This document shows positions 1 to 58,962 of a stretch of DNA of 64,000 nt, piece after piece. Numbering within the stretch: the first letter of the stretch is position 1; every line of letters begins with the position of its first letter. The position numbers and the translations under genes are program-made. Under the pieces are notes generated by a model that did no database searches, had not been told where the DNA came from, and saw nothing but the letters and a program-made list of their open reading frames with translations. Source of the stretch: Blastocystis sp. Blastoise (Eukaryota; Protista; Bigyra: Opalinata); assembly GCA_039096225.1 (NCBI GenBank), contig JBBPEB010000007.1, positions 1 through 64,000 on the forward strand, given 5' to 3'.

Positions 1-243
1 ATATAATATATATTTTATTTATTATGTATTTTGTTCTCTTGGTGTATTAATAGCTTTGTTGCTTTCGTATATATATATATATATATTTATACATAATCTT
101 TTTTTATTCTAATATTTCCCTTTTTTTTTTCTTTCACATTGGTATTCCTTTCTTGTAACTTTTATTGTGTTTTTCTATAATTTTATATATATATATATAT
201 TATTTTCTATTCATATATACTTATAATTACTTTTGTTTATCGT

Positions 244-306
244 ATTTAAGCTCCATAATGGATGGATATATATATATATATACAGGTTCAAATCCTGGCT
301 TAAATA
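244..306 (+). ncRNA. tRNA-like element with (TA)n in place of anticodon arm (type A)
   Basis: Acceptor stem ATTTAAG/CTTAAAT, D-like stem CCAT/ATGG with AATGG loop, T-arm CAGG-TTCAAAT-CCTG (B box), followed by TTTT. Confidence 0.65.
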
Positions 307-414
307 TTTTATTTTATTATATTCTTTTTATAATTAATTTTTATATTATAATTATATTATATATATATATATAGAAGATGAATTCAATATATTAAAATAT
401 ATTATTATTTTAAT

Positions 415-484
415 ATTTAATTTCTATAAATGGATAGAATATATAAATATTATATATATATCAGGTTCGATTCCTGACTTAAAT
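415..484 (+). ncRNA. tRNA-like element with TA-rich anticodon region (type B)
   Basis: ATTTAA/TTAAAT stem (one mismatch), CTAT/ATAG D-like stem, TCAGG-TTCGATT-CCTGA T-arm with canonical B box. Confidence 0.6.
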
Positions 485-2174
485 TATTCTATTCTTTTAA
501 TTTATAATTATTATTCTATATATATAGAATTCAAATGTTTATCTAATCAATTATGTAATATATATAGTTATCTTCAATTATTTAATCATCAAGAAATCTC
601 TTTGTATTTACAAAAATTAAAAGATTTTCAAATAGTAATATAGTCTTCTAATTAATATTTCTTTCTTTTCTATCTTTATTTTCAATTCTCATGACAAATA
701 TCATCTTAATATGTTTATATCAACACTTCAGCACCAGTAATTAAAACATTTTTATATAAAATATGTTAATTTATTATCTTTTTTCAATTATAAATATTCA
801 TTATAACATATTAAACTTATATAAGCATACTACATAACTATTTTGATACACAATTCATCCATTCTTAAAAAATATTTTAGTCTATTTTTCAACTTTTAGT
901 CATACTAGTGTATACTATAGACTATTATTCAATGAATAGTATCAATTTTAATTCAAAAGAATAATATATGTTATTTAAAAATAATAAAATAAGAATAAAA
1001 AGAAAAATTACAATAAGAACTTTATCTTTCTTTTCAAACTTCTTCTTTTTATTTATTTATTATTTAGATACTCCTAATATTCATTATTTATTCATTTTTA
1101 TACTCATTATCATCTCTAGTCATCATATATATTTTTTATTTTATACTTTACTAAAACATTATCTTCTCATTCTTATTAATTATTTTCTTAAAGTTATTAT
1201 TATGTTTAATTCTTATTAATAATCACTTTATAAATTCATTTAACATGTTTTTATAAAGTATTTTAAACAAATCTTGTCAAAGACTCTCCTTCAACTATCT
1301 TCAAACTGTTCATGACTCAACTTTTTAATGATTTTAGTACTCTATTATTAATAGACTGTGACACTTTTCTTTAAAATATTCTTTTATACACACAATTCTT
1401 AACATTATTAAACTATTTTGTTTTTAAAACAAGTTATTATCATACACACATGCTTATTAGTCTATAATAACTTCATAAAAGTTATTTTTGTTTATTTAAG
1501 TCAACATGAGTGAATTCATAGTTTTTTACAAAATGTCTTTAAACTAAACTTTTATTTATTTAAATAGTATCTATATGTTAATTTACATTAATTGTATTTA
1601 TATTATATTATAAAAACTATTTTATGATATAAAAAATTAAATTTTAAAATAAAAAATAAAAATGATATACAATCAATTTTTCTTTTTTTATTATGTTTTT
1701 TTTATTAATATTATATATTATATATATATCCAATACACACACAACCTATATAATAATAATATATAATAAAATAAATAATATATACCTTATTAAAGGGTTA
1801 AACACCCTCTAGTTGAAAGAATAGTTTAGAAATTTTTGAATTTTTGTTATATTTTTTTTTACCTATTTTAATCATTTCTATACCTAATACTTACAAAGAA
1901 GACTCAATACTTCATTAAACACACTCAACTCATCCTATATATACTTTCTATATAAAAATAACTATATAATATAAAATATTTATACATAATCACCACAATT
2001 GTCTAATATAATATATACCTTAAAAAGTATTCCAATGATACTAAGACAACATAAATGATCCAAAATCATCGTAGAACATAGTTTATCATCATAAGTACCA
2101 AAACCAACACTACAAAGACAATGGGAAAAAGTGATGTTATGAATTTTCATTCATAAACATCACTTTCAACTTAA

Positions 2175-2234
2175 TTAAAATCTTCCCATTCTTACCTTAA
2201 ACCTTTTCAAACGTAGTAATTCAAACAGATCCAT
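2175..2234 (-). CDS. Candidate micropeptide MDLFELLRLKRFKVRMGRF (19 aa)
   Basis: Conserved with copy 2; only synonymous or conservative substitutions. Confidence 0.3.
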   Translation of the reverse strand: MDLFELLRLKRFKVRMGRF

Positions 2235-2429
2235 GAATAGCACCACATTTCAACAAACCACAAGTATCCTAACACTATAAATAGCTACACATTCAAACTC
2301 AAGACAAGAATGGCGTCTATTTATTATTTAATATAAATAATATTTCATTATAAAAATAAAAATAAATATATAGAATTCATTAAATAAATAAAAATAAAAG
2401 AATTACCATTATAATTTAAAAAAAAAACA

Positions 2430-3080
2430 AAAAAAGTAAAGTAAAATATTAAAGCCTCTCAAAAAGGTCAACCACTTTTTTACCCTAATAACATTTTGGT
2501 TGACTTTTTTATTTTAATTCATTCTATTGGCTTATTTCATCCTACAATCGTAGAATCGTAGACTCTACGATTCTAGGATTGTAGACAGCCAATCAAATTC
2601 ATTATCCTACAATCCTACAATCGTAGAATCGTAGACTCTACGATTGTAGACTACCAATCAAATTCATTATCTTATATTCTACAATCGTAGAATCGTAGAC
2701 TCTACGATTCTATGATTGTAGAAATGAAAAACTCTATTTTTATTGGATAAATCTTTTTTTATCCAATTATTTTCTTCTTTTTTCAATTCTACAATACCCA
2801 ATTATTTTATTTTATTTTTTTAACCAATTAAATTAATTATTTTCACCCTAATAAAATTTTGAGAACACTTCTTTTAAAACATTACCACTTTATTCTATCA
2901 TTTTTTTACCCTAATACTATTTTGGTTCACTTTTTTACCCTAATACTATTTTATTTCACTTTTTTTTAAACTTATTCTATTGGTTTATTTAATCCTACAA
3001 TCATACAATCCTAGACTCTACGATTCTACGATTCTAGACTACCAATTAAATCAATAATATCTTTTTTTATCCAATTATAT
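2430..3080. promoter_or_regulatory. CCAAT-box / ACCCTAATA telo-box / 8-bp palindromic repeat array (copy 1)
   Basis: 10 CCAAT/ATTGG sites between 2526 and 3075, four ACCCTAATA motifs, palindromic CTACAATCGTAGAATCGTAGACTCTACGATT arrays. Confidence 0.55.
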
Positions 3081-3140
3081 TTATAATATAATATATTTTT
3101 ATAACATAAATTAACATATTCTCAATATATATTTTTTTTT

Positions 3141-3177
3141 CCCTAACCCTAACCTAACCCTAACCCTAACCTAACCT
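3141..3177 (+). repeat. Interstitial telomere-like repeat (CCCTAA/CCTAA)
   Basis: CCCTAACCCTAACCTAACCCTAACCCTAACCTAACC directly after T9. Confidence 0.85.
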
Positions 3178-3529
3178 TTCTTATTTTTTCTTATATAGGC
3201 TCTATAGTGCAGTTAGTACCTGGATATTCTTCTATTCATTCTTTAAAAGGTATATATATATATATATATATATAATTACTATTATTCAACTATATAATTA
3301 TTTCTATTTTATAGAATTTTTTTCTCTTCTTAGATGATACTATTTATTTATATCTCTCTTTAGTCATTATTATATGTTTTTGGATTGTTCTTGGTCGTAT
3401 GGGCTACATTTTATTCTATATATATTATTTTTTTATATATATTTGTTTGTTTATATAATTATATATATATATATTGTTTTATATAATATATACTTCTATT
3501 GAACTTTATTATTACCCTTTTTTGGTTGT

Positions 3530-3550
3530 ATTTAAGCTCCATAATGGATG

Positions 3551-3594
<44 letters not shown>

Positions 3595-3615
3595 GGTTCA
3601 ACTCCTGACTTAAAT
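3530..3615 (+). ncRNA. tRNA-like element with (TA)n anticodon region (type A)
   Basis: ATTTAAG/CTTAAAT, CTCCAT/ATGGAG, long (TA)n, TCAGG-TTCAACT-CCTGA. Confidence 0.65.
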
Positions 3616-3755
3616 CTTATATTTTATTATAATTCTATTATTATGTTTTATTTATAGTCTTTTTATAATTAATTTTTGTATTGTAATTCTATTATATATA
3701 TATATATATATAGAAGATGAATTCAATATATTAAATTAATTCAAAATGTATTATT

Positions 3756-3828
3756 ATTTAAGTTCTATAAATGGATAGAATATATATATATATATATATA
3801 TATTTCAGGTTCAATTCCTGACTTAAAT
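3756..3828 (+). ncRNA. tRNA-like element with (TA)n anticodon region (type B)
   Basis: ATTTAAG/CTTAAAT, TTCTAT/ATAGAA, (TA)n, TCAGG-TTCAATT-CCTGA. Confidence 0.65.
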
Positions 3829-5525
3829 TATTATTCTATATATAGATTTCAAGTATCTATCAGCTCAAAATAATCAACTATATTTTATTATTAATATATA
3901 TATAGACATACTCAGTTAGTTTATCATCAAAGGTCTCATTGTTTTTATAAAAGAAAAAAATTAAATAATATTCAAATAATAAATAGTCTTCTAATTAATA
4001 TTTCTTTCTTTTCTATCTTTATTTTCAATTCTCATGACAAATATCATCTTAATATGTTTATATCAACACTTCAGCACCAGTAATTAAAACATTATTATAT
4101 AAAATAAACTAATTTATTATCTTTTTTCAATTATAAATATTCATTATAACATATTAAACTACTGTAAACATACTACATAACTATTTTGATACACAATTCA
4201 TCCATTCTTAAAAAATATTTTAGTCTATTTTTCAACTTTTAGTCATACTAGTGTATACTATAGACTATTATTCAATGAATAGTATCAATTTTAATTCAAA
4301 AGAATAATATATGTTATTTAAAATTAATAAAATGAGAATAAAAAGAAAAATTACAATAAGAACTTTATCTCTCATTTCAAACTTCTTGTTTTTATTTATT
4401 TATTATTTAGATACTCTTAATATTCATTATTTATTCATTTTTATATCTATTAAGATCTCTAGTCATCATATATATTTTTTATTTTATACTTTACTAAAAC
4501 ATTATCTTCTCATTCTTATTAATTATTTTCTTAAAGTTATTATTATGTTAAATTATTATTAATAATCACTTTATAAACTCATTTAACATGCTTTTATAAA
4601 ATATTTAAAACAAATCTTGTCAAAGACTCTCCTTCAACTATCTTCAAACTGTCTATAATTCAACTTTTTAATGACTTTAGTACTCTATTATTAATATTCT
4701 GTGACACTTTTCTTCAAAATATTCTTTTATACACACAATTCTTAGCATTATTAAACTATTTTGTTTTTAAAACAAGTTTTTATTACACCTATATGTTTAT
4801 TAGTCTATAATAACTTCATAAAAGTCATTTTTGTTTATTCAAGTCAACATGAGTGAATTCATAGTTTTTTACAAAATGTCTTTAAACTAAACTTTTATTT
4901 ATTTAAATAGTATCTATATGTTAATTTACATTGATTGTATTTATATTATACTATAATTATCATTTAAACATATTAAAAAATTAATTTTTTAAAATAAAAA
5001 ATAAAAAACATATTCAATTATTTCTTCTTTTTTTATTATGATATTTTTACTTTAATTATACACAAAATACATATTAAGCACACACACAACCTATATAATA
5101 ATAATATATAATAAAATAAATAATATATACAATTATAATTCATCAAAGAGCCTCTAGTTGAAAACAAAGTAGAAACATTTTGTAATTTTTAAGTAGTTTT
5201 TGTTTTCTATTTTGAATCGTTTCAACGATAAATATTGCTTAAATAATTTATATTTCATATTATATACATTCATAACCACCTATATAAACTTTATAAATAA
5301 AAAAATATATATAATATAAAATATTTCTAGACAATTAAGTTAATTGTCTATTTTTTACATACCTTGAAAAATTATAAGTTGACACTAACAGCACCCATTC
5401 ATCAAGATATCATCACACAACACCACTAACAACGAAAACAGCCAAAAGGAAGACCTAAAAAACGACACAATATACTGATGTCTAAACTTATCGTTCAAAG
5501 ACATCAGTATCATCGATACAGCATC

Positions 5526-5636
5526 TTACCTATTATAACAGTATAAAATAATATAAAATATAATAATATACCTAATTGGAAATCTTCCCATTCTTACCTT
5601 AAACTTCTTAAAACGCAAAATTTCAAGCAGATCCAT
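5526..5636 (-). CDS. Candidate micropeptide MDLLEILRFKKFKVRMGRFPIR (22 aa; putative intron 5530-5571)
   Basis: Homolog of 2175-2234. A GTATAT...ATAATAG 42-nt intron-like segment lies just before the stop. Confidence 0.3.
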   Translation of the reverse strand: MDLLEILRFKKFKVRMGRFPIRYIIIFYIILYCYNR

Positions 5637-5824
5637 GAATAGCACCACATTCTCACCTTTTACAAGAATCCATACACTATATCAAACCAACAATCCAACA
5701 CACATACCAACAATGGCGTCTGTTTACTTTTTTATATACATAATACTAACTTATAAATATAAAAATAATTATATAAAAATCAAAAACTTTAATAAAAATA
5801 ATTCATAAACTTTAAAAAGAAATA

Positions 5825-6472
5825 AAAAAAGTAAAGTAAAATATTAAAGCCTCTCAAAAAGGTCAACCACTTTTTTACCCTAATAACATTTTGGTTGACT
5901 TTTTTATTTTAATTCATTCTATTGGCTTATTTCATCCTACAATTCTACAATTCTAGATTCTGGAATTCTAGAATTGTAAACTACCAATCATTTTCATTAT
6001 CCTACAATTCTACAATTCCAGAATCTAGAATTCTAGAATCCTACACTACCAATCAAATTCATTATCTTATATTTTATACTCTACAATTCTACAATCCTAG
6101 ATTCTAGAATTCTAGAATTCTAGACTACCAATTATATTTAATATATCTTTTATTATCCAATTATTTTATTTTTCTATAATTCTACAATACCCAATTAATT
6201 TATTCTATTCATTTTAACCAATTAAATTAATTATTTTCACCCTAATAAAATTTTTAAAACACTTCTTTTAAAATATTACCACTTTTTTCAACCAATTTTT
6301 AACCCTAATACTATTTTGGTTCACTTTTTTACCCTAATACAATTTTATTTCACTTTTTTTTTAATTCATTTTATTGGTTTATTTCATTCTACAATTCTAC
6401 AATCCTAGATTCTAGAATTCTAGAATTCTAGACTACCAATTAAATCAATTATATCTTTTATTATCCAATTAT
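5825..6472. promoter_or_regulatory. CCAAT-box / telo-box / palindromic repeat array (copy 2)
   Basis: 11 CCAAT/ATTGG sites, ACCCTAATA motifs, CTACAATT/CTAGAATT 8-bp units. Confidence 0.55.
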
Positions 6473-6534
6473 ATAACAAATATATAATATTATTATAACA
6501 TTTTATAACATACTCTCAGTATATATTTTTTTTT

Positions 6535-6564
6535 CCCTAACCCTAACCTAAACCCTAACCTAAC
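6535..6564 (+). repeat. Interstitial telomere-like repeat
   Basis: CCCTAACCCTAACCTAAACCCTAACCTAAC directly after T9. Confidence 0.85.
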
Positions 6565-7600
6565 TCTAGAAGTCATAAATAATCATAAATATACATTATA
6601 TGTACAGATTATCAATTTTCAAAAATAATCATGGGAATTTATCAAATAACACTTTATAAGTCATAAATAATCATAAATGTGTCATTATATATAAAATTCT
6701 CAACTTTCATGAACAGTCACATATTATGTCACAAAACACCTATAAGTCATATGTACATATAACCCTAACTGTTTGAGTCAAATATATCTTAGTTTTTAAA
6801 AGAGACATTAAGATATCTTACATAGCACTCTATACCTCATATATATTAATCAGTATTTTGTTATCCATGAAAATATCTTAATTTCAAAAATAATCACGGG
6901 AATATATTAAATTATACTCTAAAAGTCGTAAATAACCATAAATATATCATCTTATGTACAGATTATTAATTTTCAAAAATAATCATGGAAATTTATCAAA
7001 TAAGACTCTATAAGTCATAAATAATCATAAAATTAGCATGATCCATAAAATGCTTGACTCTCATAAAATACCACTTAAATATGTTAAAGAAAACCTATAT
7101 GACTTATAATATACATAAGTCTATGGTTTTGTATGAAAATATAATAATTTTCTAAATAATTAATGAAATATCCCATATAACACTCTATACATCATATATA
7201 TACATAACTCTATCATTTTTATTAATAGATCTTACTTTCAAAAATAATCACGATTATCTATCAAATTTTACTTTGGATAACATAAATAATCATAAATGTA
7301 TCATTATATTTAAAATCATCAACTTTCAAAAATAATCACGGGAATTTATTCAATTTTACTCTAGAACTCTTCAATAATTATAAATATATCATTTTATATA
7401 TATATATATAATCAAGTTTAGAACATAATCACGATTATTCATCAAATTACACTCAAAAAGTCATAAATTTCATAAATACTTCATTATATATAAAAATGAT
7501 TACTTATTAATTTTTTTGTTATGAATGACTTATCAAGTCTCCTATATACTCCTAGGTACTCATTATTATCTATATGACTTACATACACCTATACTAGAAC
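6565..7600. repeat. Degenerate ~88-bp satellite with ~354-bp (4-monomer) higher-order repeat
   Basis: AAGTCATAAATAATCATAAAT-type monomer starts at ~6570, 6658, 6744, 6832, 6924, 7012, 7100, 7188, 7277, 7365, 7458. Several monomers four apart are the most alike. Confidence 0.75.
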
Positions 7601-16449: not shown

Positions 16450-18641
16450 ATTCTTTATATTTTTATTATTATTTGAATTATTATTGGCAGTAGTATTAAC
16501 ATCAATAATATCATTAATATTACTAATGTCTTTATTAATATCTATTTAAAAATTATTATTATTATGATTATAAGATTGATTCCCTATTTCTGAATGAAAC
16601 ATAATATAATAGGATAATGAAGAATATTTAGTAGCTCTTCAACAAATAAAAATACCTGTAGAAGAAAGAAATGAAGGAGAAATAGGATAAGTAATAGCCT
16701 CATTATTATTTATATTAGTATTATTATTATTATTATTATTATTATAATAAAAATTAGTTTTGATTGTTAGCCTTGAATTCAAAAATATAGTAATAATAGT
16801 AGTAGTAACTAATAATAGTGATGGGAATTCAGTAATGATTGAATTGGAGATAAACAAATAGTATGACTTCGTTCAGTCTTATAATAAGAATGTATAGTAG
16901 AAGAAGTAGTAATAATAGTAGTTGCTGTTGTAATAGAAGTAATAAGAGGATCAGTCGTTGTATAGTAGTAATTGATTTAGATGAGAATGTAGGAACAGAC
17001 ATACTATTAGAGTTAGTTAAATGATTCATATCAGAACTATTATTATGATAAGAAGAAAGAGATTCTGAAGTCATAGAGAGAGAGGTTATATTGTGTAGAT
17101 TAGATAAAGAATGGATAGTATATGATGTAGGAGGAAGACTATTACTAACAGTAATATGTATAGGATTAAGAAGAGTAGAAATAGTAATAGTAGTAGCATT
17201 AGGAATATAAATATTATTATTAGTAGCAATTATAAAATTATTATTTATATTAGTATTATTTGGAATTATAAAATTATTATTTATATTATTATTATTAGTA
17301 GTAATAACAGTATTATTCAGAGAAGAAATATTATTAATAGTAGAAATAAATACCATATTATTAGTGTATGCCATATTATTTTCATTAGTATTATTATTAT
17401 TCCTAATATTATTAGTATTATAAATCATATTATTAGTTTCAGTTTTCATAATCTTATGTTCTCCTTTTATGTGAATTAAGGATTGATTCTTCTCATTATA
17501 TGAGATATTATTATCATTCTTTGCAGAATTATTAATAGTATAATTCTGATCTTCTGTTGATATCGATAATGGTATATATATATTAAAAGAATGTTCTGTC
17601 GAATCTAATATATCATTTGATTGAATATTAGTATTATTATCTTCATTATTATCATTATTTGAATAATGTATATCTATAGAAGGATTAGATGAATATAAAT
17701 ATATATTATATAAAATATATTTAGAAGAAGGAAGAAGAGCAATAGGAATAGTATAATGAGTAGTTTCAGACTGATTATGTATATATGTAGATAGGCTATC
17801 TTATATAGTAGAATGTAAATTATGAATAGAAGAAGAAGAAGAAGAAAGAATGACTAAGAAGACGTAATGATGAATGTTTTGTTTTAGAAGATTCTGTTGT
17901 TTCTGTTAATGGTATATTAGTATCATATACTGTAGATATACTATTTGAATGAAATCGATAATTTTGAGGTATTCTATTTATACTATTCTTCAGTTTAAAT
18001 AATTATTTATCTTGAGGAATCATAGGACTTAATGTATTCTTATTTATATATTCATTTTATGAATCATTATAATGGTTTGTAGCTATTTTATTAGTTAATA
18101 TAAAGTTATTTGAATTATTATTATTTATTTGAATTATTATTAGTATTCACAAAAATATTACTACTTATAAGATTTGACTTATCTTCTTCATTTGCTGAAG
18201 TTAAATATGTAGAAAGGATAGAATACGTTTTTTGATGTAGATATATATATATATATCAGAAAATATATTATTTTCTCGAATAGAAGAATATGATTAAATA
18301 TAATCATTTGATATAGGTATAGTTGAAGATGATGAATTTTTTGTTGAATAATTAGAAGAATCTGTAAATGAATGAGATGAAGAAGAAGGAATAGTAGATG
18401 GAGATCTATGTATAGTTGTAATAGGAGAAATATTTGTATTATTAATAGAAGGAGAAGGAAAGATAGAAGGAGACATTGAACGAAGTGGAATAGGTGAATG
18501 AGATTTCAGAGTTGAAAGCACAGAAAGACTTTTTCGATTCATAAATAATCGCGTAAATAATGTGTTATTCCCATGAGAAATAGAAGCTCGATTTAGTTTA
18601 TTTTTTTATTGTGAGGATCGCATAGAAGAAGGAGATACAAT

Positions 18642-18681
<40 letters not shown>

Positions 18682-20135
18682 ACAAAATAGTAATACTTAT
18701 TTTTTAAGAATTTCTTCAAATTCAGTATGGATTTGTTTCATCACATTATATACTTTATATCACAGACTATTCTATAACTATAATATTATTCTTTTAAAAA
18801 GAATCTCAAAAATTATTTTTAAAAGAAGAATATAAGTAACTACATTAATAGGAGAATAAAATAATGATATTCAAGATGCATTAATTTTTTATGACTATAT
18901 TAAATATATATAAATAATATATAACTATAATAAGAATAAATATAGTAATTATAACTATAATAAGAATATATATATATATACCTATAGAATAGTTCTTCTT
19001 CCATTTATAATCGATATTTCAATATATATATAAGTTTAGTATATTTAATAATGTTTATATCTTTCTTTTAACACTTCTAAACCATATACAACAATTTATT
19101 TCTTTATTCTTAGATAATATTATATATTTTATATAAATCGATATATTTACACCTATATATTCATTAATAAGATATTTTTTAACATAAAAATAATTCAAAT
19201 ATTATTTATTATTAAAATCAACAATTCAAATATAATATCTAATTCATTTATTCAAAAAATAATTCCTTTTTAAATAATAAAGACCAAATATAGTATATAT
19301 TGAATATAAATATGGATAACATTCAAATAGCTATTTAATGATTAATATTTGAATTGTTTTCTCTCTCTATATATATATATTCTTATAAATTTTTATTGTT
19401 AGAAATATATATATATATATACATTATCAAGGTAGTAAGTATATTAAATAGATCAAATGAACCTACAAATGAATAAGATGAATCATCCTCTATATAATAT
19501 TTATGTATTATATATATATATATTATTATTATTATATATAATAGATACATATTATACAAATAATATATATAATATATATTATATAATATATTTATATACA
19601 TCAAGTTATTGAAAACCTTTATGAGTATAATCCTTCTGAAAATGGGAGATATGAATTGTTATAAGAGTAAGAATAATGATTTAAAGGCAAGAAGATGAAA
19701 AGGAGGGACTTTTAGAAGATAATAATTATATAAATCTATATAGATATATAATATTTGTTGATTAATAACTTTTATAAAAAAAATTCAATTTAAAAGTTTA
19801 GAGATAAAGATATAGATTCAAAATAATAGTTGAATAACTATATATTTATATAGATTTGATAAAAATAGAATAATAAACATAGAGATAACAAAGAGATTGT
19901 TAAATGTCATGAATATTCTATATAACAAAGAAGAGAGAAATATACAAAATATTTTACATTATTATATATAATACATATATACAAAACTATCATCTTTATA
20001 AAATGGTATTAATGAGAATATCACTTGTTTTTCTTCATTTATTTCTATAGTATAAATATATATATAATGGAAAATATATTCACCAATTGTTCTCTATAAT
20101 AATAATAATAATAATAATCTCTCTCTTCCATGACA
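16450..20135 (-). pseudogene. Pseudogene with RhoGAP-like exons and Asn/Ser-rich low-complexity tail
   Basis: Exons read NIHDI*QSL and LLKVPPFHLLAFKSLFLLL*Q (RhoGAP-like). The N/S-rich ORFs 16829-17449 and 18294-18542 are fragments interrupted by stops. Confidence 0.3.
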
Positions 20136-21191
20136 CTTTTTTATTGAACAGCAATTGTCATAAAAAAGTGACACCTTTGTTATTTTTTAACAATGTAAAA
20201 TATTTTTTATTCAACTGTATTAAGTCTGATTTAAATGTCTTTGTGTGATAGTCACAACAAGTACCACAAAATATTGGCAATACACCTATATTATTTTTTA
20301 TATATCTCATCAAATTTATCTTTTTTATTATTTATTCAAATTTTCTATATTATTCTATTATTCATTTATATTTATACTCTTCATCATAATAAAACTATTT
20401 TTATAATCATTCCTTTTTTATATTAGTTATAAATAATATTAAAAGGTTCATTTAAATACTTTATATAAATTTTATACTATTCATGAATTCTATACTATTC
20501 TCAACTTTTTCTTGTTTATAAACTATTTTTTCATTATATTTAAAAACTTTATTTAATTTTATTATTAATATTTAATTACATTTGTTCATTTATTTAAATA
20601 ATATTCATTCTATATATTTATTTTACTTATTTTTATATTTATTTTTTTTCAACAATGATATAATTAATTGTCTATTATTTAAATTAATATTAATATATAT
20701 AGTATTTTTATTATAATTGTTTATAAAAAATATCAAATTTTTAATAAATTAAAGAATAAAAACATTTTTCATTTTATATTATAGATAACTATTTATTATT
20801 TTGAACTTTCAATAAGTATTGTTTTTAATTATTTAAATAAACGATAATGTATTGATGTTTATTATTATCATAGAATTCCTATCCTTTATATAGTTTATTG
20901 TTTTTATTCTTATGATTTATATATTATACTTTGGTATATATCTATAAAATAAATTTATTAATAAAAATTATTTTTATTAAAAAACTATTTATTTATTATT
21001 GAAAATATTATATACTAATTATTATTAATAAACTTTTAATTGTATAAATATAGTTAGAAAACAATTAGCAAAACTATATTTTATGTTTTTTTAAATAATA
21101 TATATATTGAAAAAAACTTTTCTCAATAAAGAAAAGAAAACAATATATATAAAGAGAGAAATAAAAAAGAAATAGTAATTTATTATTCTTT

Positions 21192-22756
21192 TTATGCTCT
21201 TCCCCATACTTCATAATCTTCTACTGTAAACTTATTAGTAGAATTAGAGTTATTAGTATTGACAAATAATGATGATTTTTGAGGAGTATTCACTTCAGAA
21301 TAAGAATGTGCATTACAATAAGAATTAGTATTACTATGACATTGATCAGATATATAGATATCACAAAAATATGGACCATAAGAAGAATAACAATATATAC
21401 CACAACTTCTATCACTGTTTGTATAATCATATTTAGTAGGAGGAATACCATGTTCATTACTTAATGTAAATAGAAATTCTTTAGAATAAGGTTTCCAACC
21501 TATGTAAAACATATAGAATAATAATAGAGAATAAATATACTTCCTGAACCAGATTCCCAACTTTGATCTGTATATCCTCCAAATATATTAATATGATTAT
21601 TATGACCTATATGTTTGATTATAGTTACTGTTTCTCCTTTATAGTCACAATATTTATGAAATTTATTTGCTTTATATTTATGTTCGCTTGCTCTATATAT
21701 ATACAATGATATAATATAATAAATTAATAAATACCTAAATAATAATTTCCATTTCTTTTCTTTACCAAGCCAATTTACTAAAGATAATTCAGTAGTTTGA
21801 TCTACTATATATGAATGTGGAAATGGAACATTAATGTTCCATCCATTCTTTACACTATTTCTTCCTTTATCACCAAATAAACTATACATTTCATTCTCTA
21901 ATAATTCTCTATTTATATTCTTTGTTTCTTCTTCAGAAATATATATACAATTATATTGAATATATTCATAAATATGATCAATATATGTATAATCCTTCTT
22001 CAAATACATTTCATTATTCTTTTCGTCAAAATATACGTATCCATCATCATATTCATTTACTATATTATTCCATAATTCATTCTTCTTCCAATAATCTCTT
22101 AATATATCATCTTTCTTATCATTTATATAAAGAATAACATCATCATCTTCTTCATATTGTTTCACACCATGATCTCTTCTATAATGGGTTTTCATTAATT
22201 CTTCAGGAATAGGTAATTCACAATATTCAAATAAATCTAATAATTCAATTTGATCTCCAAATTTCAATTTATCAATATTCACTTTTTTATTCATTAAAGA
22301 ATCAATTAATAAAGGAAAAAGTGTTTCATCACCACGATAATCTAAAAACATATTACCATCATTAGTTCTTTGATTTTCTTGGGAATATTCATACAGAAGA
22401 CTACCTACTAGACTATTTGTTATTCTTTTAGGAAGAGAATAAACTGGACCGCTACTTGTAAATCGAATATAATCAATTCCATTATCATTATTATTCATAG
22501 TAGCATCATATTCATTCAGAAAAGAAGATTCTTGGATAATTATTTTTGGATCATCGCCATTCTTATCATTCATTCCTTCACAATTTCTTGTTAATCGATT
22601 CACTAATGCATTTATAGATTCACCTGAATGAATACAAAAACTTATTGACTTACTTAAAATACCAATCAAATCACTAATCAGTCTTTCAAAATGAATTACA
22701 TCCTTCTGAATATCACCAATCTTATTCGCATCAAATTCTACCTTCTCTTTCACCAT
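21192..22756 (-). CDS. BTB-like + TLDc domain protein (3 exons; introns 21693-21734, 21500-21540)
   Basis: WKLLFRASEH...FHKYCD...IFGGYT...FLFTL...YGPYF...VEDYEVW TLDc motifs. N-terminal DGNMFLDYRGD is BTB/T1-like. Splices in frame. Confidence 0.85.
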
Positions 22757-24575
22757 TCTAAACTATAAAAGGAATAAAAGAAAAATGAAAACTTTTTAAA
22801 AACTATTTTTCTATCCTATATAGAGAAACAAGTCTCTCTTATTCAAAATTCTAGTTAAAAACTCATTTGTGAAATATATTCTTTTATAGCGTAAAAATTT
22901 ATAATAATCGTAAATATTTATGAAAAACTAGGTTTTCACCAATTCACGATTATTTTTGATTTATTGATTTTTATTTTAAAATAAATACAGATTATTTACA
23001 ATTTTTTATTCATTTTTTATATTTCTTTATTATTCATTTAAATTGCATTTATAATGAAAACTATTTTATTTTGTTATTTATAAATCATGTAATCTACAAG
23101 AATAACATTAAAATAGATCAAAATAAACAAATAATTGTCATTCTTTATTCCATTAGCTAAGGTAGCAAGTCGATTCTATATTAGTATTTAATCAGAATGT
23201 TCTGAATATTAATAATTTTCATTAATTACTTTTGAGTTTCTACTTTTATTCACATTTTAGTTTCAAATCTTCTTCATAGGATCTATTTAAACTTCAATTC
23301 ATATTTTATGTTATTTAAATAATCATAATTCACATGAATCACTGATCTAAATCATAATTATGATGTTTCTTTAGCTAATCATTCCAATTCTATTCTCGAT
23401 TTAATATTTTTATATATTTATTACATTCATAATATAATTCTCTACCCATTCAAATCACTTTATTTCTTTCAATTTCAATATCCTTCTAGTTAATTTAAAA
23501 ATCATTATTTTTTTCTATTTTTATTCTTTAAAAAAATTAATCCTAATATATCTTATACTCCTTATAATTATCATGTAAATGAGTATATTATCTCCATCCA
23601 AACAGTTATTATCACTTTTATTTTTGTATACTATTCAACAACAAATTATTATCTAAGATACTTAACTTATATATATTCACTATATTCATCTATAGACCAA
23701 ATATGATTAGCTCACAGTACAGAACGTTTCTTATTCATTATCTTATTTAAACAATATCAATTATATAATAAATAATGAAATTATGATATAATAGCATATA
23801 AAATGATTTCAAGTATAACAATTCATATATATACATTTAATAACTGTAATTTTTAAATATATTTATATTTATAATGAATCATAAAAACATATTTTTTTCA
23901 ATATTTATAAACATGTATAATTCTATTGGATGGTATACTATACTATTAATCTATTTATATCAAAGTCTCTATATGATATTTAATTATACATATATTAAAA
24001 ACTATTTGGTATTTTATATAATAAGCATGAAAAGAGATTCTTATATAAACAACACATTTCCTCTATTCTTCTACAGCTTTCTTTGAAACTACTTTTATAA
24101 ACTGTTAAACAAACATTATATAACTACATAAGAAACCCTAAAACAAATATTTTTTTATATATTTTGAATTTGTAATTCTTTTAAAAAAGTAGATCCAAAA
24201 CAGTCTTTTTTCTTTTTAATACTTCATATATAGTAGTAAACTCTTATTAAACATTTTTACCAAAAATTATTTCAAGTTATTTTTGTATAAGAATAAATCT
24301 TTAGAAGCATTTATAGTTCTAAATGAATACCTAATAAGCACAATAAAACAATGAATTCATAGCAAACAATAATATTATTTTAAAAACATCAAATACTGAA
24401 AACAACAGCTAACATATATACTGATTATTTTTATTCCATTATTTTCAAATAAAATAATAAATTTATATATATATAATTAATAGAAATTTAAATAAATATT
24501 TTTTTTTAAATAAGAAAATAAATAGATTATATATAAAGCAACAAAAAAAAACAAATATAAAATAATTTACTTAAT

Positions 24576-26793
24576 TTAATCGAATTTATAATACACATGA
24601 TTTTCTTGAATAAACATAGAATCAATCAATTGTTGTTTATATGAATTAATGTGTTCATCTGGAATATATTCATCTATACAAAACATTATAGATATATATA
24701 TCTGTAAATATACTGATATGAATTATAAATTCTTTCAATTTAGGAATTCTTCTTGTAGTTATAAATTGATCAATTTTGATAGGTGTTCCTCATTATAAAT
24801 ATCTATAAAAAAAATATAATTTAAAATATTTATATATATGTATACATATTTCTAAACTTTTTAAACTTTTCGTCTTATTTTCATTTATACAATCAAATAA
24901 TGTTTCTATTTCATATTCATTTATTGTTTTATCTACATATTATATAATACATATTAGTTACATATATATACCTTCTGTACATTTAATTGTATCCATAAGT
25001 GAATTAGCATCATGTTTACATCGAAGAATAGAAGTATTAGGATCATAAATATACTCATAAGAAGAACCACCTATAGAATTAATAACATTAATGAATAATA
25101 GTGTATTATTTGGATTGAAATACAAGTTAATTGAATACTAGTTGATAATGGAAAGTTGTTATGATTCATATATGTGCATAATTTTTGGATAAAACCATTC
25201 CACCAATCATTGTCTCTAAATGTTCCTATTAATATATATAATATTGAATAAAATATTATATAATAAAGAAAGAATACACAAAAATTCATAATTTATAATA
25301 TATATCTTATTATTACTATAAATATATACGAAACTTGATCAATTTCAACTTAGGAAAACTATCTGTAGTATATAGTTCACAAAAGTGTTCATCAGGTATA
25401 TCATCAGGGTCTATAATAATACAAATATTAAAATAAGATCAGATATATCATGTTTTCTATTGAAACGTTTTGTTTGTAGAATATATATATACATAAAGAG
25501 AATTCAGTTATATTATGGAAACAACCTTTAAGAATCAATCTATTTATATCTGTCATATTTCCTTTATAATTTTATTTAAATTAATTAAAAAATTATTATT
25601 GAACATAATCATCATATATATATATATAATTACCATAAATAAAAACAATAGAAGCGATAGGAATCAGTATATTCATTATGTTTTCTAATATTGTGAAATA
25701 CTCAGAGAATGAGTCTTCCTTGATATACCGTACTATACATTATCATATATTTATAATATAATATACAATTAATCGTTAATTTTTTAATAACTTTAATCTT
25801 ATTATCATTAAAAACACTTGATATCCATGTTAAATATTCAAAACTTATATTTTCTTCAACTATAGACGTTATAAAAAACATAATAATATATAATAAAGAA
25901 TATACATGAAATATTTAATTCATTCAAATGTTCTAATACACTACTCTTTAAAAATCCTTCCAAAGAATTTCTTATATCATCTTCCATATTATCTATACAT
26001 GAATATTAATACTATATATTAAATGAATACCATTGAATGTAATATCTAAACGATCAATATTATGTTTATAATTTTCAAAATAATCCAATTTTTTGACATT
26101 TATAGAATCAGAAGTATCAACTTTATATGAATAAAAATAATATATAGCATATAAAATAATATTCTTTTAATAAATATATATATTTTATACTATAAATTTT
26201 ATCAAAAAAAATAAGATTTTTCTCCAATAATTCTTTTAAATGTGGTAAACAATAAATCAATCCATCTATATAAAAACAAAGAAATACAATTGTATAGAGA
26301 GTGTAATACTATCAAATATATATACTACAAAGTAATGGATTAATTTCATCAATATGAATTGAATGACTATAGACTAGGTTATCTAAAAGAGTAGCTATTT
26401 TCTTGTTATTGTTGATATCAATTCTATTTATTCTAATAGTATCAATTATTGACATTAAATCCATAGGAAAAAGGAATTCAAAATTACTAGTAGCTAGAAT
26501 TAAAATAATAGTTATGTATTATATATGAAATAACTTATTGTAACATTGTAATTGATAATATGTAATTTAGGGAAGCATTCTTTTTTTATTGAAGACAATC
26601 TGAAAGATTCTATATATCATATATACTTTATACAATATATATCTATACCATCATCATATATAATTTCAGTAACATTTGGAAATACGTGAGTTGTCATTAT
26701 TTTCATAAACAATTTATTATTAATTTTATCAACTAATTCTTTAACTATATTAAATATAGGGACTGGAAGAAAAATGGGCTTTTGATTCCACAT
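24576..26793 (-). pseudogene. 5'-truncated LRR-like repeat protein gene, 15 exons, all introns phase 1, one frameshift at ~24763
   Basis: Exons spliced by eye give FPNVTEI, FPKLHII, LEHLNELNI, FPKLKLI, LKSLEI, IPKLKEF repeats. A 1-nt loss in a T run occurs in exon 14. The ATG at 26793 lies inside the TIR element. Confidence 0.75.
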
Positions 26794-31263: not shown

Positions 31264-33954
31264 ATGCCTGCAGTTGATGAACCTTATGTTTATGTCAGTA
31301 AAGATCCAGAAATAGATGCTGCTGAAGTTCTTACTGAAGAGAATTTAATGGAACGAAGTGAGTATTCTTGTGCTTACTGTGGTTTATCCGATGTAAATTG
31401 CTGTATTCAATGTGAAGATTGTGGAAAATGGTTTTGTAATAGAAAAGATACTTCAAATGGATCACATATTTTTATTCATCTATTCCTTTCAAAACATATT
31501 CATGTTTTTTGCCATCCTGAGAACAGATATAGCTCGATCCTATCATTAAAATGTGAAAATTGTGATAACAATAATATATTTGATTTAGGTTATATCATTA
31601 ATGATTTTGATAAGATATTTTTTATTTGTGGTTCAAAATGTTATAATGATATACTAAAAGAAGCTCCTGAAGTTGTGTCAAATAATTATTATTCTATGAT
31701 TTCTGAAAAGCAAATTCGTCATGAGTTCTTTGAATCCGTTAATGAACTTATTGGTGGCGTAGATTATAAAAATATTAAATATGAAATTATTGAAGGTTTA
31801 GAAAAATTATGGAAAAATAATCCATTAGCTACTATTGAAGATGTAAAAATTATTCGAAAATCAAATCATAATGTGAAACCTGTAAAGATTACATATGAGA
31901 ATGGTGAAGAATATAGATCTGTATATAATGATTTAATTCGTTTAGAGAATCAAGAAGAAATCCAGCAAACATCTGGAAAACGATTTCCTGTACATGTTGA
32001 ATGGTCTATAGAACAAAATTTATTATTAATGAAATTTAATATGAATGATTGTTCTATTGATTATCCTTTGGCACAAGGAGGTCTTGTAAAATTTAAACCT
32101 AAACCTCAAGTACCTAATTTATTATATGCATCCTTATTAGATATAGATATAGATAATGAGCTTGATGGTAAATATATTATTGATGGATATGTAAGATCAA
32201 CACGAAAAAAAGATGTTGTTATTGTTGTTACTAATGTTAATAATATTCCTGAAGATATTGTGAATACAACTGATTTTGTTATGAGAATTATTCCTACTTC
32301 TGTAACTTATGGTTCTATGATATCTGTTCTTGATGCTATGTGCTCATCTCCTTCTAAAGATAATGAAATTAATAATACACTTAAAAATATGAAAAATAAA
32401 CGTGAATATTTCAAACAGAAAAACACAGAACGTACGTTTACAATCTTACCTGAATTAAAGTCAATTATTTTAGGTAAGAAAACAATGAATTATCCTATAC
32501 CTAATTATTCTAATAATGAAAATGATGAAGATGCTCTTCCTTATAGGTTAAATCAATCTCAACATTTTGCACTTCAACAATCTGAAAAATTTCCTTTAGT
32601 ATTAATACAAGGGCCACCAGGTACAGGGAAAACTTATACTAGTGCAGCTATTATTGATAATTTATTAAAGAAAAATATTTCAAAGAAAATATTTGTATGT
32701 GCTCCTTCAAATACAGCTGTAAATAATTTAACTAATATCTTAACAAAGAATCATGTTAAGTGTTTACGTGTTGTTTGTAGAGGTTTAGAAACAGAAGAGA
32801 ATTATTTAGAAAATACTCCTTGTCTTCATGATTTAGTAAAACAGGCTGTTTTTAGTAGTGGAGATGAAATACTTATGGATTTATATATAAAAATATTGAA
32901 TCATATTCAATTATCTGCAGAAGAAAATAAGAAAATTGCTTCTTTTAAATATCCTCTTGAAGAAAAAATAGTAAATTCTTATGATGTTATTTGTTGTACT
33001 TGTTGTTCTGCATATTTAAAATGTTTTCAAAGATGTAATTTTGATACAGTATTAATAGATGAAGCAGCTCAATCTGTAGAACCATTATCTCTTATTCCTT
33101 GTCGATATAATTGTAAAAAGTTAATTTTAGTAGGTGATGATAATCAATTAGCACCTATTATTAAATCAAAAGAAGCTGCTCTTTTTGGTTATACAAGATC
33201 TTTATTTAATCGATTAAGAATAGCAGGTACAAAACCTCTTTGTTTATTAAAACAATATAGAATGCATCCTTATATATCTTATTTTTCAAATCATATGTTT
33301 TATGAAGGTAAACTTATTGATGATGACTGTACAAAACAAATGGATGTTGTTTTTAAATGGCCAAATAATCAACTTCCTTTCTTTATTTGGAATACAGAAA
33401 ATCAATTTGAAGAAGAAATTCCACCAAATCGTCTTTCTTATATTAATCGAAAAGAAGCAGAACGTATATTTGAATTATTAAATTTAATGTATTCTAATGG
33501 TATAAAACCAGAAGATATTGGTGTTATTACTTTTTATAATGGTCAACGTACCTATGTAGAAAATTTAATTAATACATTTGAATTAAATTCTGAATATCGA
33601 AATTATTTAAATCAAATAACAATTAATTCTGTAGATGGATTTCAAGGTCAAGAAAAAGAATATATTATTATTTCTTGTGTTCGATCAAATCAAGAAATAG
33701 GAATTGGATTCTTATCAAGTTCTAGAAGATTAAATGTAGCATTAACACGTGCTAAGAAGGGTTTAATTGTACTTGGAAATGTTGAAGTATTAAATAAACA
33801 TTTAATATGGAATCAATTTGTACAATTTCATTCACAAACTCATTGTATATATAATGGTGAATTAAATAACTTACAAGTATATACGAAATATTTAAAACAA
33901 ATTAAATGTACACCTGAAAAACTAGAACAACATCTTCGAATGGAAAGAAATTAA
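31264..33954 (+). CDS. UPF1: UPF1-like SF1B RNA helicase, single exon, divergent
   Basis: CH zinc domain (CAYCG...CGKWFCN...GSHIFIHL), [55 protein letters not shown]. Confidence 0.93.
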   Translation: MPAVDEPYVYVSKDPEIDAAEVLTEENLMERSEYSCAYCGLSDVNCCIQCEDCGKWFCNRKDTSNGSHIFIHLFLSKHIHVFCHPENRYSSILSLKCENCDNNNIFDLGYIINDFDKIFFICGSKCYNDILKEAPEVVSNNYYSMISEKQIRHEFFESVNELIGGVDYKNIKYEIIEGLEKLWKNNPLATIEDVKIIRKSNHNVKPVKITYENGEEYRSVYNDLIRLENQEEIQQTSGKRFPVHVEWSIEQNLLLMKFNMNDCSIDYPLAQGGLVKFKPKPQVPNLLYASLLDIDIDNELDGKYIIDGYVRSTRKKDVVIVVTNVNNIPEDIVNTTDFVMRIIPTSVTYGSMISVLDAMCSSPSKDNEINNTLKNMKNKREYFKQKNTERTFTILPELKSIILGKKTMNYPIPNYSNNENDEDALPYRLNQSQHFALQQSEKFPLVLIQGPPGTGKTYTSAAIIDNLLKKNISKKIFVCAPSNTAVNNLTNILTKNHVKCLRVVCRGLETEENYLENTPCLHDLVKQAVFSSGDEILMDLYIKILNHIQLSAEENKKIASFKYPLEEKIVNSYDVICCTCCSAYLKCFQRCNFDTVLIDEAAQSVEPLSLIPCRYNCKKLILVGDDNQLAPIIKSKEAALFGYTRSLFNRLRIAGTKPLCLLKQYRMHPYISYFSNHMFYEGKLIDDDCTKQMDVVFKWPNNQLPFFIWNTENQFEEEIPPNRLSYINRKEAERIFELLNLMYSNGIKPEDIGVITFYNGQRTYVENLINTFELNSEYRNYLNQITINSVDGFQGQEKEYIIISCVRSNQEIGIGFLSSSRRLNVALTRAKKGLIVLGNVEVLNKHLIWNQFVQFHSQTHCIYNGELNNLQVYTKYLKQIKCTPEKLEQHLRMERN

Positions 33955-34556: not shown

Positions 34557-35461
34557 TTATTCTGTTTTTCCTGTAGACTCTTCTTTTTTTTCATTTTCGT
34601 TATTTTCTTTCTTCTGTTTTTTTGACTCATATGTATCTATATAAATATATATAATACATTCCTTTTAAAAGTAATTAAATACCTTTTTCTTTATTAGATT
34701 CTTTTATATCATGCTTTCGTTTATTCTATATATAAATATATTTATTATATTATATATATATTGAAAAGAAATTATAGATATAGAATCTTTTATAATACAT
34801 TTTTAAGTTCTCTTCGTTTGATCATTTTATCTCTTAATTCTTTTCTTTCAGAATCACTATAATCATTATTATTATTATAATAAAATATAAATAATAATCT
34901 TATTGAAAATAAAAGAACAATGATAAAAGAATTATCATACCTTCCATTTAATATAATAACATCATCTTCATTAAAGGGCTTACCACAATTTAAACATTTC
35001 TCTGATGTAATTTCTTTAATAGCATGTTGAGACATCACACAACCACAACTTTTTATTATACAAAACTTTGAGTGATTCCCAACTTCTTCTTTTGTTATAG
35101 GACAAATAATTCCTTTATTATTTACACTTGCTCTCCAATAATTATTCGAATCTTCAATACCTTTAGATTTTTTTATAGGAGCATAAGTAAAATGAACAGG
35201 AAACACATCTTTCAATTTACGTATATGACTGAATTCCTCAGGTAAGGATTTATCGATTAATGCATTAATTATAGCTTCCTTATTATATAAATAACCCAAT
35301 TCACAAGCAACAATAGGCTCTGATAATTCTTCACCACTTAATGCACAATAGGTCCATTTTGCAGCTTGAATTTCTTCGGGTGTATAATGAGCTTTTTCTT
35401 TTTTTGTACTCCATCTACTATATTTTCTTTCTAATGCTTTGGTACCACCATCACAACCCAT
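34557..35461 (-). CDS. RTF2: Replication termination factor 2 (Rtf2 RING-finger), 4 exons
   Basis: MGCDGG start, CALSGEEL...VACELGYLYNKEAI, ICPIT, CGCV...CLNCGKPF...DVIILNG. Confidence 0.9.
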
Positions 35462-35775
35462 TTTTGATGTGTTTATTGAATATGTTAAATAATAAAACCA
35501 AATTATTGTTATTACGAATATTATAGAATAATTTTGAAAATATTGCAAATAATACAAATTAATTAAGGAAATCGATATTTATACTAAGTTGTCGGCAAAA
35601 AAAATCAGTCATATTCTGAATTTGACTTTATTTATAGGAAATTCAATTTTTATTTTTCTTATTTTTCACAAAAAGTAATTGATAATCTATAGAATAAAAA
35701 ATAAAATTGATTTATAAACAAAATTTTATTCCAAGTGATTCTAATTGATTTATTTTATTTAGGCGATTATTGAGA

Positions 35776-52717: not shown

Positions 52718-52791
52718 TGCTCACAACCGGGATCGAACCGGCGACCCCCGCGTTATTAGCACGGTGCTCTGACCGACTGAGCTATGCGAGC
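52718..52791 (-). tRNA. tRNA-Ile(AAT)
   Basis: GCTCGCATAGCTCAGTCGGTCAGAGCACCGTGCT-AAT-AACGCGG...GGTTCGATCCCGGTTGTGAGCA, full cloverleaf. Confidence 0.97.
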
Positions 52792-57884: not shown

Positions 57885-58082
57885 TTATACTCTATTTTAA
57901 AGTTTTTTGAAAGAATAAAAATAAATTTATTTATTCATGTAACTAAAATAAAATTGAAATGTTATTTGTTAAAATTAAATATGATGTTCAACCCATCTAA
58001 CAACTTGAAATAAATAAATATAATAAACAATACTCACTTATTAAAAATATATAGTAAAAATTTTAAAATAAAACGAAAAATA

Positions 58083-58155
58083 TGGTCAATCCGGGGGTCG
58101 AACCCGGGACCTTTCGCGTGTAAAGCGAACGTGATAACCACTACACTAACCGGCC
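58083..58155 (-). tRNA. tRNA-Val(TAC)
   Basis: GGCCGGTTAGTGTAGTGGTTATCACGTTCGCTT-TAC-ACGCGAA...GGTTCGACCCCCGGATTGACCA. Confidence 0.97.
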
Positions 58156-58962
58156 ATATGATTATTTCTGTATTCCCATCTATCTGAGAAAGTAAGGCTT
58201 CTTCTTTGTATCTACTAGAAATACTTATTTCAAGAACTATATATTTAGTAGACTACATAAAATATATCAATATTCACTTGGTTTATGTTATTGAAATAGA
58301 TTCATCTCAAATATAAAATTCATCTATAATTTGTACAAGAAATAGTACTTATATATACTGTTACATTTCTCTTTTCAATACTATTTTATTCTTTTGGATT
58401 AATTGATAAAAACCACATATATAATACAATAGATACTCTATTTTACATAATAGCAAATAATATAAAGCTAAATGTTATATTAAAAATTATATATATATAA
58501 TAATATTTTCAATAATAAAACATAGATAGAAGGTAATCAATGATTGAATTGATCAGTATATAGTAGATAAATGTAACATTTTAATAGCAGTTATTCATAT
58601 TCTATGAATAATGGTATCCTGTTCAGAATAATCATTAATGTATACTATTCTATGTCAAATAATAATATGATTAATTCTTGAATAAAACAATAATATTGTT
58701 TAATAGAAATAGAATAATGGTAATAGAAAAGAATAATTTATAAGTATGTTTTGAAGGTATTCAACAATACCAAGAATGTGATTTTACACATGTTTTTCTG
58801 TTTAAAAGTCTTTAACTCATTAATGAATAATAAACGAAACAGCAATAATCATTTAATATATATATATAACATAGAATAAGAAATAAATAGAGAACAATAA
58901 AAATAGAGAGAACTTATGAAATGAATGTATGATTTTATAATAAAGACACTAATGGAAAGCAA

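Follow-up and report, generated by a model that had tools for sequence, protein, structure and literature searches.

A 20–23 kb subtelomeric block with one exact telomere-repeat border recurs near contig ends of Blastocystis sp. Blastoise

The first 64,000 bases of contig C29 of the Blastocystis sp. Blastoise genome (GenBank assembly GCA_039096225.1, contig JBBPEB010000007.1, 1,427,927 bp long; hereafter the window) open with two tandem units of ~3.3 kb, each of which closes with a run of nine thymidines (T9) followed by telomere repeats. A sequence-only reading of the window had interpreted the units as a non-autonomous, telomere-targeted element family or a dedicated subtelomeric RNA cassette. 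In this work, we found that the 3.3 kb unit is the centromere-side end of a subtelomeric block of 20–23 kb and not a discrete element. This block was probably spread by DNA recombination rather than as a small retroelement. With modest confidence, we favor a scenario in which it is comparable to the Y′ elements of yeast, was spread through recombination involving telomeres and interstitial telomere tracts, and was then subject to erosion and healing. All conclusions are drawn from this one assembly (33.34 Mb in 34 contigs, labeled C1, C2, and so on; the suffixes s and e denote contig start and end, e.g., C14s and C3e).

The tandem arrangement of the two units and the module order described in the sequence-only reading were both confirmed. 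The copies occupy positions 1–3176 (unit 1) and 3178–6564 (unit 2) of the window, and direct repeats between them are spaced 3343–3402 nt. The centromere-side end of the block consists of a gene, two tRNA-like elements, a core of 0.95 kb, a diverged segment, an array of CCAAT boxes, palindromes, and telo-boxes, the T9 run, and CCCTAACCCTAA. Unit 1 is incomplete: C29 begins inside it (window base 1 is base 1 of the contig), no telomere is present at the contig start, and homology extends further upstream. Unit 1 (positions 1–3165) is 95–97% identical to eight copies in C13, C14, C17, C25, C26, and C31, and the alignment starts at base ~1335 of those copies, which places at least 1335 nt of homologous sequence beyond window base 1. 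This upstream 1335-nt flank is 92–100% identical among the eight blocks.

The extent of the block was established from its distance to chromosome ends. True telomeres in this genome read CCCTAA at left contig ends and TTAGGG at right contig ends, are 0.4–2.2 kb long, and close 12 contig ends (C3e, C4s, C13e, C14s, C16e, C17s, C17e, C19e, C25e, C26s, C26e, and C31e). The T9 run lies 19.5–25.7 kb from the telomere-capped end in C13, C14, C17, C25, C26, and C31, and likewise from the end of C20, where no telomere is listed. Furthermore, tandem blocks are present in C26 (T9 spacing of 20.85 kb) and C13 (T9 spacing of 23.4 kb). The units, the flanks, the 1358-nt stretch that follows the terminal telomere of C17 (hereafter X, used as a search query), and ~1.3 kb next to the unit were read letter by letter; the middle ~14 kb of the block was covered by profile searches only. 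X is 100% identical and starts exactly at the telomere repeats at the C17, C25, and C26 ends, as well as at a 12-nt internal tract within C26. Elsewhere, it lies 3.1–3.7 kb inside a telomere or internal tract (twice in C13, once each in C14, C31, and C3, and twice in C26) or ~4.6–4.9 kb from the contig ends of C10 and C19. An 88-bp satellite adjoins the true telomeres at C4s, C14s, C13e, C16e, and C17e. At three of these five ends, the telomere abuts TCACGGG of the satellite, and this border is common to ends with and without blocks. The block includes both this ordinary satellite and X, and ordinary ends without a T9 unit carry these two sequences as well. Its telomere-side border varies, taking at least five forms (the satellite in two phases, X, an intron, and the hairpin region described below).

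The centromere-side border is exact. A genome-wide search for the pattern T8CCCTAACCCTAAC (T8–9/CCCTAACCCTAA) returned 17 matches, each ending a copy of the family, and a reversed-pattern control returned none. Two copies of a third subfamily (type C), located in C20 and C28, have a variant border in which ...CATTT is followed by CCCTAA. The family therefore reaches well beyond the two local copies, with a total of at least 19 copies and the border on 14 contigs, and the common right junction predicted by the sequence-only reading is found as T9/CCCTAA in 17 copies and as the variant in two. The first two telomere repeats after T9 are invariant. The remainder of the tract ranges from no further repeats (12 nt in total) to ~1.1 kb, the longest tract being C14:25727–26831, which has the size of a working telomere and lies 25.7 kb inside the contig between the block and ordinary satellite. 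In one partial unit copy (C26:1273512–1274430), a (CCCTAA)10 tract gives way directly to a long homopolymer of C/G, which is probably a base-calling or assembly fault.

The sequences beyond this border are different in all 19 copies. Even in homologous arms, the satellite is entered at different breakpoints (window position 6565 in C29 and the equivalents of positions 6657 and 6773 in C32 and C31, respectively). Other flanks are the canonical TCACGGG border, an AT tract, X, and an intron. In C8, the flank is located 279 nt upstream of a Helitron Rep/helicase gene that is intact, and in C10 it is part of the coding sequence of a different repeat. At five minimal junctions, the next two bases are CC, such that the G strand of the recipient ended in GG. 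The blocks of C14s, C17, C25, and C26 are nearly identical and yet sit on four different recipients, which indicates that several of the joins are recent. Confinement to chromosome ends, also proposed from sequence, agrees with the distribution of the copies: 17 of the 19 are oriented toward a contig end at a distance of 0–82 kb. Copies chained onto former telomeres are found in the window itself and in the tandem arrangements of C26 and C13. Unit 1 ends in T9 (3132–3140) and a 36-nt tract of CCCTAA repeats (3141–3176) on the plus strand, which would mark the join of unit 1 onto a healed end of unit 2. Unit 2 ends in the same way with T9 (6526–6534) and a 29-nt tract (6535–6563), a putative remnant of the original telomere of this arm, followed by the tandemly repeated 88-bp satellite (6565–7492), which is ordinary telomere-adjacent sequence of this genome.

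The telomere-side ends of the copies, by comparison with longer relatives, record where blocks were cut. At window position 3177/3178, an intron is cut and telomere repeats are joined to it. In C20 and C14:1363k, the sequence that corresponds to window position 3178 onward extends upstream through the rest of this intron. Still further upstream, five or more additional short exons are separated by GT..AG introns, each exon encoding one repeat of ~20 aa. The 3′ exons and introns of this gene open unit 2 (3178–3500, plus strand). The Ser/Asp/Val-rich repeats, 55–65-nt introns, and hydrophobic tail of this gene were seen in C14:1363k (oriented extract 1040–1500), in C20, and in C23, which carries a paralogue built alike. 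Judged from these alignments, unit 2 is a block that was truncated to 3.4 kb by a break inside the intron and healed by telomere addition. A second healing site is found in C3: the copy there is cut at a CCTAAA match that corresponds to window position ~5455, and the telomere starts at this match. The variable left truncations anticipated for the family are thus present as telomere-side cuts capped by telomere repeats. The genes of the block keep their introns, as does the one-repeat-per-exon gene.

These observations can be arranged in a sequence of events. The original end of the C29 arm would have consisted of a telomere, the 88-bp satellite, an AT-rich tract, and then genes, and would have been extended twice by the block. 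In the first step, the G-rich 3′ end of a telomere, or a broken end in GG, would pair with interstitial CCCTAA repeats next to a T9 run, either at the end of another chromosome or on a popped-out circle; alternatively, a circle excised between two co-oriented tracts may recombine into a telomere. Extension by break-induced replication to the end of the donor, or crossing-over, would then give the recipient the whole distal block and turn its own telomere into an internal tract of variable length. The new end may later erode or break and be healed by telomerase at a short G-rich match. Repetition of this cycle would produce a chain of copies that are truncated on the telomere side, with short telomere tracts between them. 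Unit 2 of the window is such a truncated block, and unit 1 would belong to the block that was joined to it next, of which the distal part is missing from the assembly.

The alternative in keeping with the sequence-only reading is an RNA route: a transcript with U9-(CCCUAA)n at its 3′ end would anneal to the G-overhang and be copied into DNA by a reverse transcriptase acting in trans. The C-strand repeats at a constant 3′ end, the 5′ truncations of differing extent, and the short telomere tracts that separate copies in a chain all agree with such an element, but a fixed end with variable truncation is equally predicted by recombination plus healing. The retained introns of the embedded genes, the 20–23 kb size of the copied entity, the ordinary satellite and X within it, and the absence of matches to the reverse transcriptase domain RVT_1 from the block ranges argue against the RNA route. 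Furthermore, the 5′ end of unit 2 is a break in the intron of a longer DNA copy, and no poly(A) is present. A partner enzyme for the unit was also looked for: none of the 21 RVT_1 matches and none of the 51 Helitron Rep/helicase matches fall in block ranges, and the reverse transcriptase elements with long open reading frames are clustered in contig interiors. For these reasons, a non-autonomous retroelement of ~3.3 kb is disfavored, and we give it very little credence. A Helitron as carrier of the block was rejected as well, all 51 Helitron_like_N copies being outside blocks. More seriously, the block may be an autonomous, self-propagating DNA element that carries its own tyrosine recombinase gene and inserts site-specifically, as a circle, into telomere repeats. 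The T9-CCCTAACCCTAA junction would then serve for attachment, the palindromes particular to each subfamily would be bound by the recombinase, and the array of palindromes, CCAAT boxes, and telo-boxes would be a control region for recombination or replication. Such an element would account for the precise and invariant border with two repeats that never vary, for the head-to-tail blocks of C26 with only two repeats between T9 and X, and for palindromes that keep their structure and change their sequence between subfamilies. On the other side, a six-frame search for Phage_integrase (PF00589) at E ≤ 1 gave 12 matches with none in the known block ranges, a search that an intron-rich gene could escape, and no recombinase-like frame is present in the first 1.36 kb of X or the 1.3 kb next to the unit. 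The constancy of the centromere-side border is not matched on the telomere side, the satellite and X are also found at ordinary ends without the T9 unit, and at five junctions the two invariant repeats are not followed by any from the recipient, the adjoining sequence being unique or satellite DNA that ends in GG. On this evidence, we regard a recombinase-encoding element as doubtful. If the block did encode one, it would represent a novel type of DNA element targeted to telomeres and a cellular counterpart of telomere-integrating viruses.

If long reads were wrongly joined through telomere repeats, the tandem units that open C29 and extended internal tracts (e.g., the one 25.7 kb inside C14) could in principle be assembly artefacts. 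C8 and C32, like C29, begin inside a copy without a telomere; the position of these starts, immediately past the tRNA-like elements rich in (TA)n, suggests a break in the assembly. These starts and the homopolymer decay in C26 speak for faults of this kind. Nevertheless, the same border is found 17–19 times on 14 contigs, the 12-nt tracts are too short for mistaken bridging, and the flanks are unique sequences, such that an artefact is highly improbable. Some points weigh against the Y′-like scenario itself. Two or three copies are misplaced, with that of C28 in mid-contig, that of C22 inverted, and that of C10 74 kb from the contig end. Among the genome-wide copies, none continues past T9 without telomere repeats, and an ancestral source locus was not found. 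An enzyme may also be encoded in the middle ~14 kb of the block, the part covered by profile searches. Moreover, the array architecture (CCAAT boxes, long palindromes, and telo-boxes beside the tract) is kept while the palindrome sequence changes in subfamilies A, B, and C, and homology-driven copying alone leaves this architecture unexplained. Finally, the anatomy, junction census, orientation, healing sites, block size, and retained introns are observed directly, but the recombination mechanism is deduced from end products in one assembly, with neither intermediates nor polymorphism observed.

Two groups of cellular subtelomeric repeats are instructive for comparison with the Y′-like block. 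In yeast, interstitial telomere tracts lie proximal to and between Y′ copies, gain of Y′ requires break-induced replication, and circles are possible (PMC13177704). Like Y′ of Saccharomyces cerevisiae, the block is repeated between the core subtelomere and the telomere, is present at some ends only, as single or tandem copies, and is accompanied by interstitial telomere tracts, of differing lengths, on the centromere side of copies and in between them. Two functional hallmarks of Y′, namely, confinement and orientation to chromosome ends and tandem copies bordered by telomere tracts, are found in the block. It differs in being three to four times longer, in containing ordinary telomere-adjacent satellite, in having a single exact site (T9) as its border, and in carrying the tRNA-like pair and an array with CCAAT boxes and long palindromes. 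Also, no helicase gene is present in the block parts read, and no Helitron/PIF1 helicase was found in block ranges; the likeness is one of architecture, with no sequence relation expected. Subtelomeric duplicons of the human type are large blocks that are common to several ends and have become mosaic by exchange between ends. Internal (TTAGGG)n islands at their boundaries mark old ends (in part from the review PMC6410037). Large blocks at several ends, telomere-oriented tracts at the borders, and mosaic copies are likewise found here, but in Blastocystis sp. Blastoise one family dominates, its border is a single exact one, there are very recent copies with 100% identity, and one internal tract is still 1.1 kb long.

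Mobile elements of chromosome ends provide the other comparison. MoTeR elements (PMC7367193) and endonuclease-lacking Penelope-like elements (PMC8557442) are reported to have a constant 3′ end that bears C-strand repeats, 5′ truncations of differing extent, and chains interrupted by telomere repeats. Like MoTeR/FoTeR, Athena-type Penelope-like elements, and HeT-A/TART, the block forms head-to-tail chains at ends, with a fixed centromere-facing end, a variable other end, and telomere repeats in between (PMC7367193, PMC12857005, and PMC8557442). Unlike these telomere-targeted retrotransposons, it has no reverse transcriptase match, keeps its introns, spans 20–23 kb including ordinary subtelomere, and has no poly(A). 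A fixed 3′ end with variable 5′ truncation is thus present in the block, whereas a reverse transcriptase and RNA-derived copies are not. Crypton-like elements, which move by a tyrosine recombinase, are expected to have two constant borders; the block has one, and the six-frame search gave no PF00589 match in its ranges.

The two units of the window represent different subfamilies and show unequal divergence along their length. In a global alignment (165–3140 vs. 3443–6534), the cores (640–1600 and 3985–4945) are 94–99% identical and gap-free. This near-identical core measures ~0.95 kb. The segment at 1870–2410 has diverged to 49–66% identity, and the array regions are 76–93% identical to each other. 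Such mosaic identity between subfamilies is typical of recombining subtelomeres. The units hold no reading frame longer than 84 aa and no convincing one on either strand, and the stop-free stretches of the cores are short and of low complexity on both strands. The possibility that the units are protein-coding was accordingly rejected. Upstream of the first tRNA-like element, positions 1–164 (plus strand) form the 3′ tail of a gene located ahead of type-A units, a hydrophobic C-terminal exon cut by the contig start, as judged from the upstream homology in the eight copies. One further unit copy, at C14:1333989–1335197 and C14:1363098–1364032, is split at the equivalent of window positions 4111–4120 by an insert of ~28 kb. 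The ends of this insert are inverted copies of at least 497 nt, with 98% identity, of the sequence at C16:967762–968258, which lies 1 kb from a Phage_integrase match. The 10-nt overlap at the split looks like the target-site duplication of a large transposon.

The arrays (array 1 at 2440–3131 and array 2 at 5835–6525, both plus strand) contain CCAAT boxes, palindromes of ~40 nt, and ACCCTAAT telo-boxes. The boxes are enriched in comparison with shuffled sequences, with 10 and 11 CCAAT boxes in arrays 1 and 2 vs. 1.3 and 1.6 expected. The ACCCTAAT telo-boxes number four per array vs. 0.02 expected, and all are oriented like the telomere tract. The palindromes (z of −9.2 in array 1 and −4.3 in array 2) differ in sequence between the two units and among subfamilies A, B, and C. 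Matches of the palindromes to Rfam microRNA-like families were sub-threshold and were judged to be chance. The T9/CCCTAA border resembles a T-run plus ACCCTAAT box that recurs four times in the array, and this likeness suggests that the border probably began as one of these boxes. In yeast, TTAGGG-type protein-binding boxes (Tbf1 sites) are located next to the internal tract in subtelomeric boundary regions. The array could be a protein-binding boundary, a promoter for a putative minus-strand start at position 2234/5636, or an origin.

In the diverged segment, hairpins are located at equivalent positions of both units (2128–2166, z of −5.6; 5472–5510, z of −4.6), as had been described, and their arms are unrelated in sequence. 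In C3, addition of the true telomere took place immediately next to the position that corresponds to the unit 2 hairpin. A micro-open reading frame of 13 codons, which starts with ATG and ends at a GTAAG donor-like site, lies on the minus strand at 2196–2234 in unit 1, with a copy at 5598–5636 in unit 2. It is present in nearly every aligned copy that spans the region and is conserved no better than its flanks: 7 of its 39 nt differ between types A and B, and the next 18 nt are invariant.

For the tRNA-like elements, three of the four proposed mimics, all on the plus strand, are predicted to fold with an acceptor stem, a D arm, a (UA)n hairpin, and a T arm (fold z of −2.5 to −4.75). These are the cloverleaf at 243–307 in unit 1 (z of −2.7), in which the (UA)n hairpin replaces the anticodon arm, and those at 3530–3616 (z of −4.75) and 3757–3835 (z of −2.5) in unit 2. 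The fourth, at 413–487 in unit 1, does not (z of −0.5); its weak acceptor stem is not closed, and the T-arm pattern is present. The anticodon arm of the elements is a (TA)n hairpin of 14–38 nt with no 7-nt anticodon loop. Rfam gave no tRNA match to the elements even at E ≤ 1, and ARAGORN called one of the four (3530–3616, as tRNA-???) without an assignable anticodon. By model recognition, they are not genuine tRNA genes. A genome-wide search with the T-arm/acceptor pattern gave 32 exact matches, 26 of which occur as pairs in the block family and six of which are single. Four of these six lie ~1.5 kb downstream of paralogues (71% identity; C5, C8, C18, and C25) of the gene that precedes type-A units, which indicates that the linkage of gene and tRNA-like element is older than the block. 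A widely dispersed tRNA-like family was rejected, in that the scattered matches are (TA)n and the specific T-arm pattern is confined to the family and a few paralogous loci. Seven near-matches of the T arm end in CTTAAGT (C1:323205, C2:789692, C5:261927, C5:302678, C16:272959, C22:261413, and C25:972085). These sites could represent genuine parental tRNA genes that gave rise to the mimics with (TA)n arms.

The remainder of the window, which has a G + C content of ~20% overall, is more conventional. Positions 17626–26564 are 88–94% identical to C26:16868–25809, C19:964285–973234, and C17:876792–880684, all of which are near ends without the T9 unit, indicating that ordinary arms are also common to several ends over >26 kb. 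Ordinary genes start well inside the window and include an intronless UPF1 helicase gene (31264–33954, plus strand), a gene for an Rtf2 RING-finger protein (34790–35557, minus strand), and genes for tRNA-Ile(AAT) (52718–52791, minus strand) and tRNA-Val(TAC) (58082–58156, minus strand). The Helitron gene beside the C8 block (C8:2940–7685, plus strand) encodes an intact protein of 1581 aa with Helitron_like_N and PIF1 domains and lies 279 nt from the T9 junction. Most of the 51 Helitron_like_N matches in the genome are in stop-free frames of 1,470–1,680 aa, and from this, the family looks young and is possibly active. Also, the reverse transcriptase elements, with open frames of 2,400–2,790 aa, occur in tandem pairs ~8.6 kb apart, with one cluster per contig for several contigs (C10:55–64k, C13:624–633k, C14:664–682k, C29:412–421k, and C15:725–747k). 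These clusters might mark centromeres.

With one block family, one exact border, 19 recipients, copies that are 100% identical, and an internal telomere of full length 25 kb from a contig end, this genome holds an unusually clean record of chromosome-end turnover. It makes the extension of ends by recombination and their healing by telomerase directly testable in a stramenopile gut protist. For annotation, genes in the last ~25 kb of these chromosomes should be treated with care, as they are multi-copy and mobile between ends.

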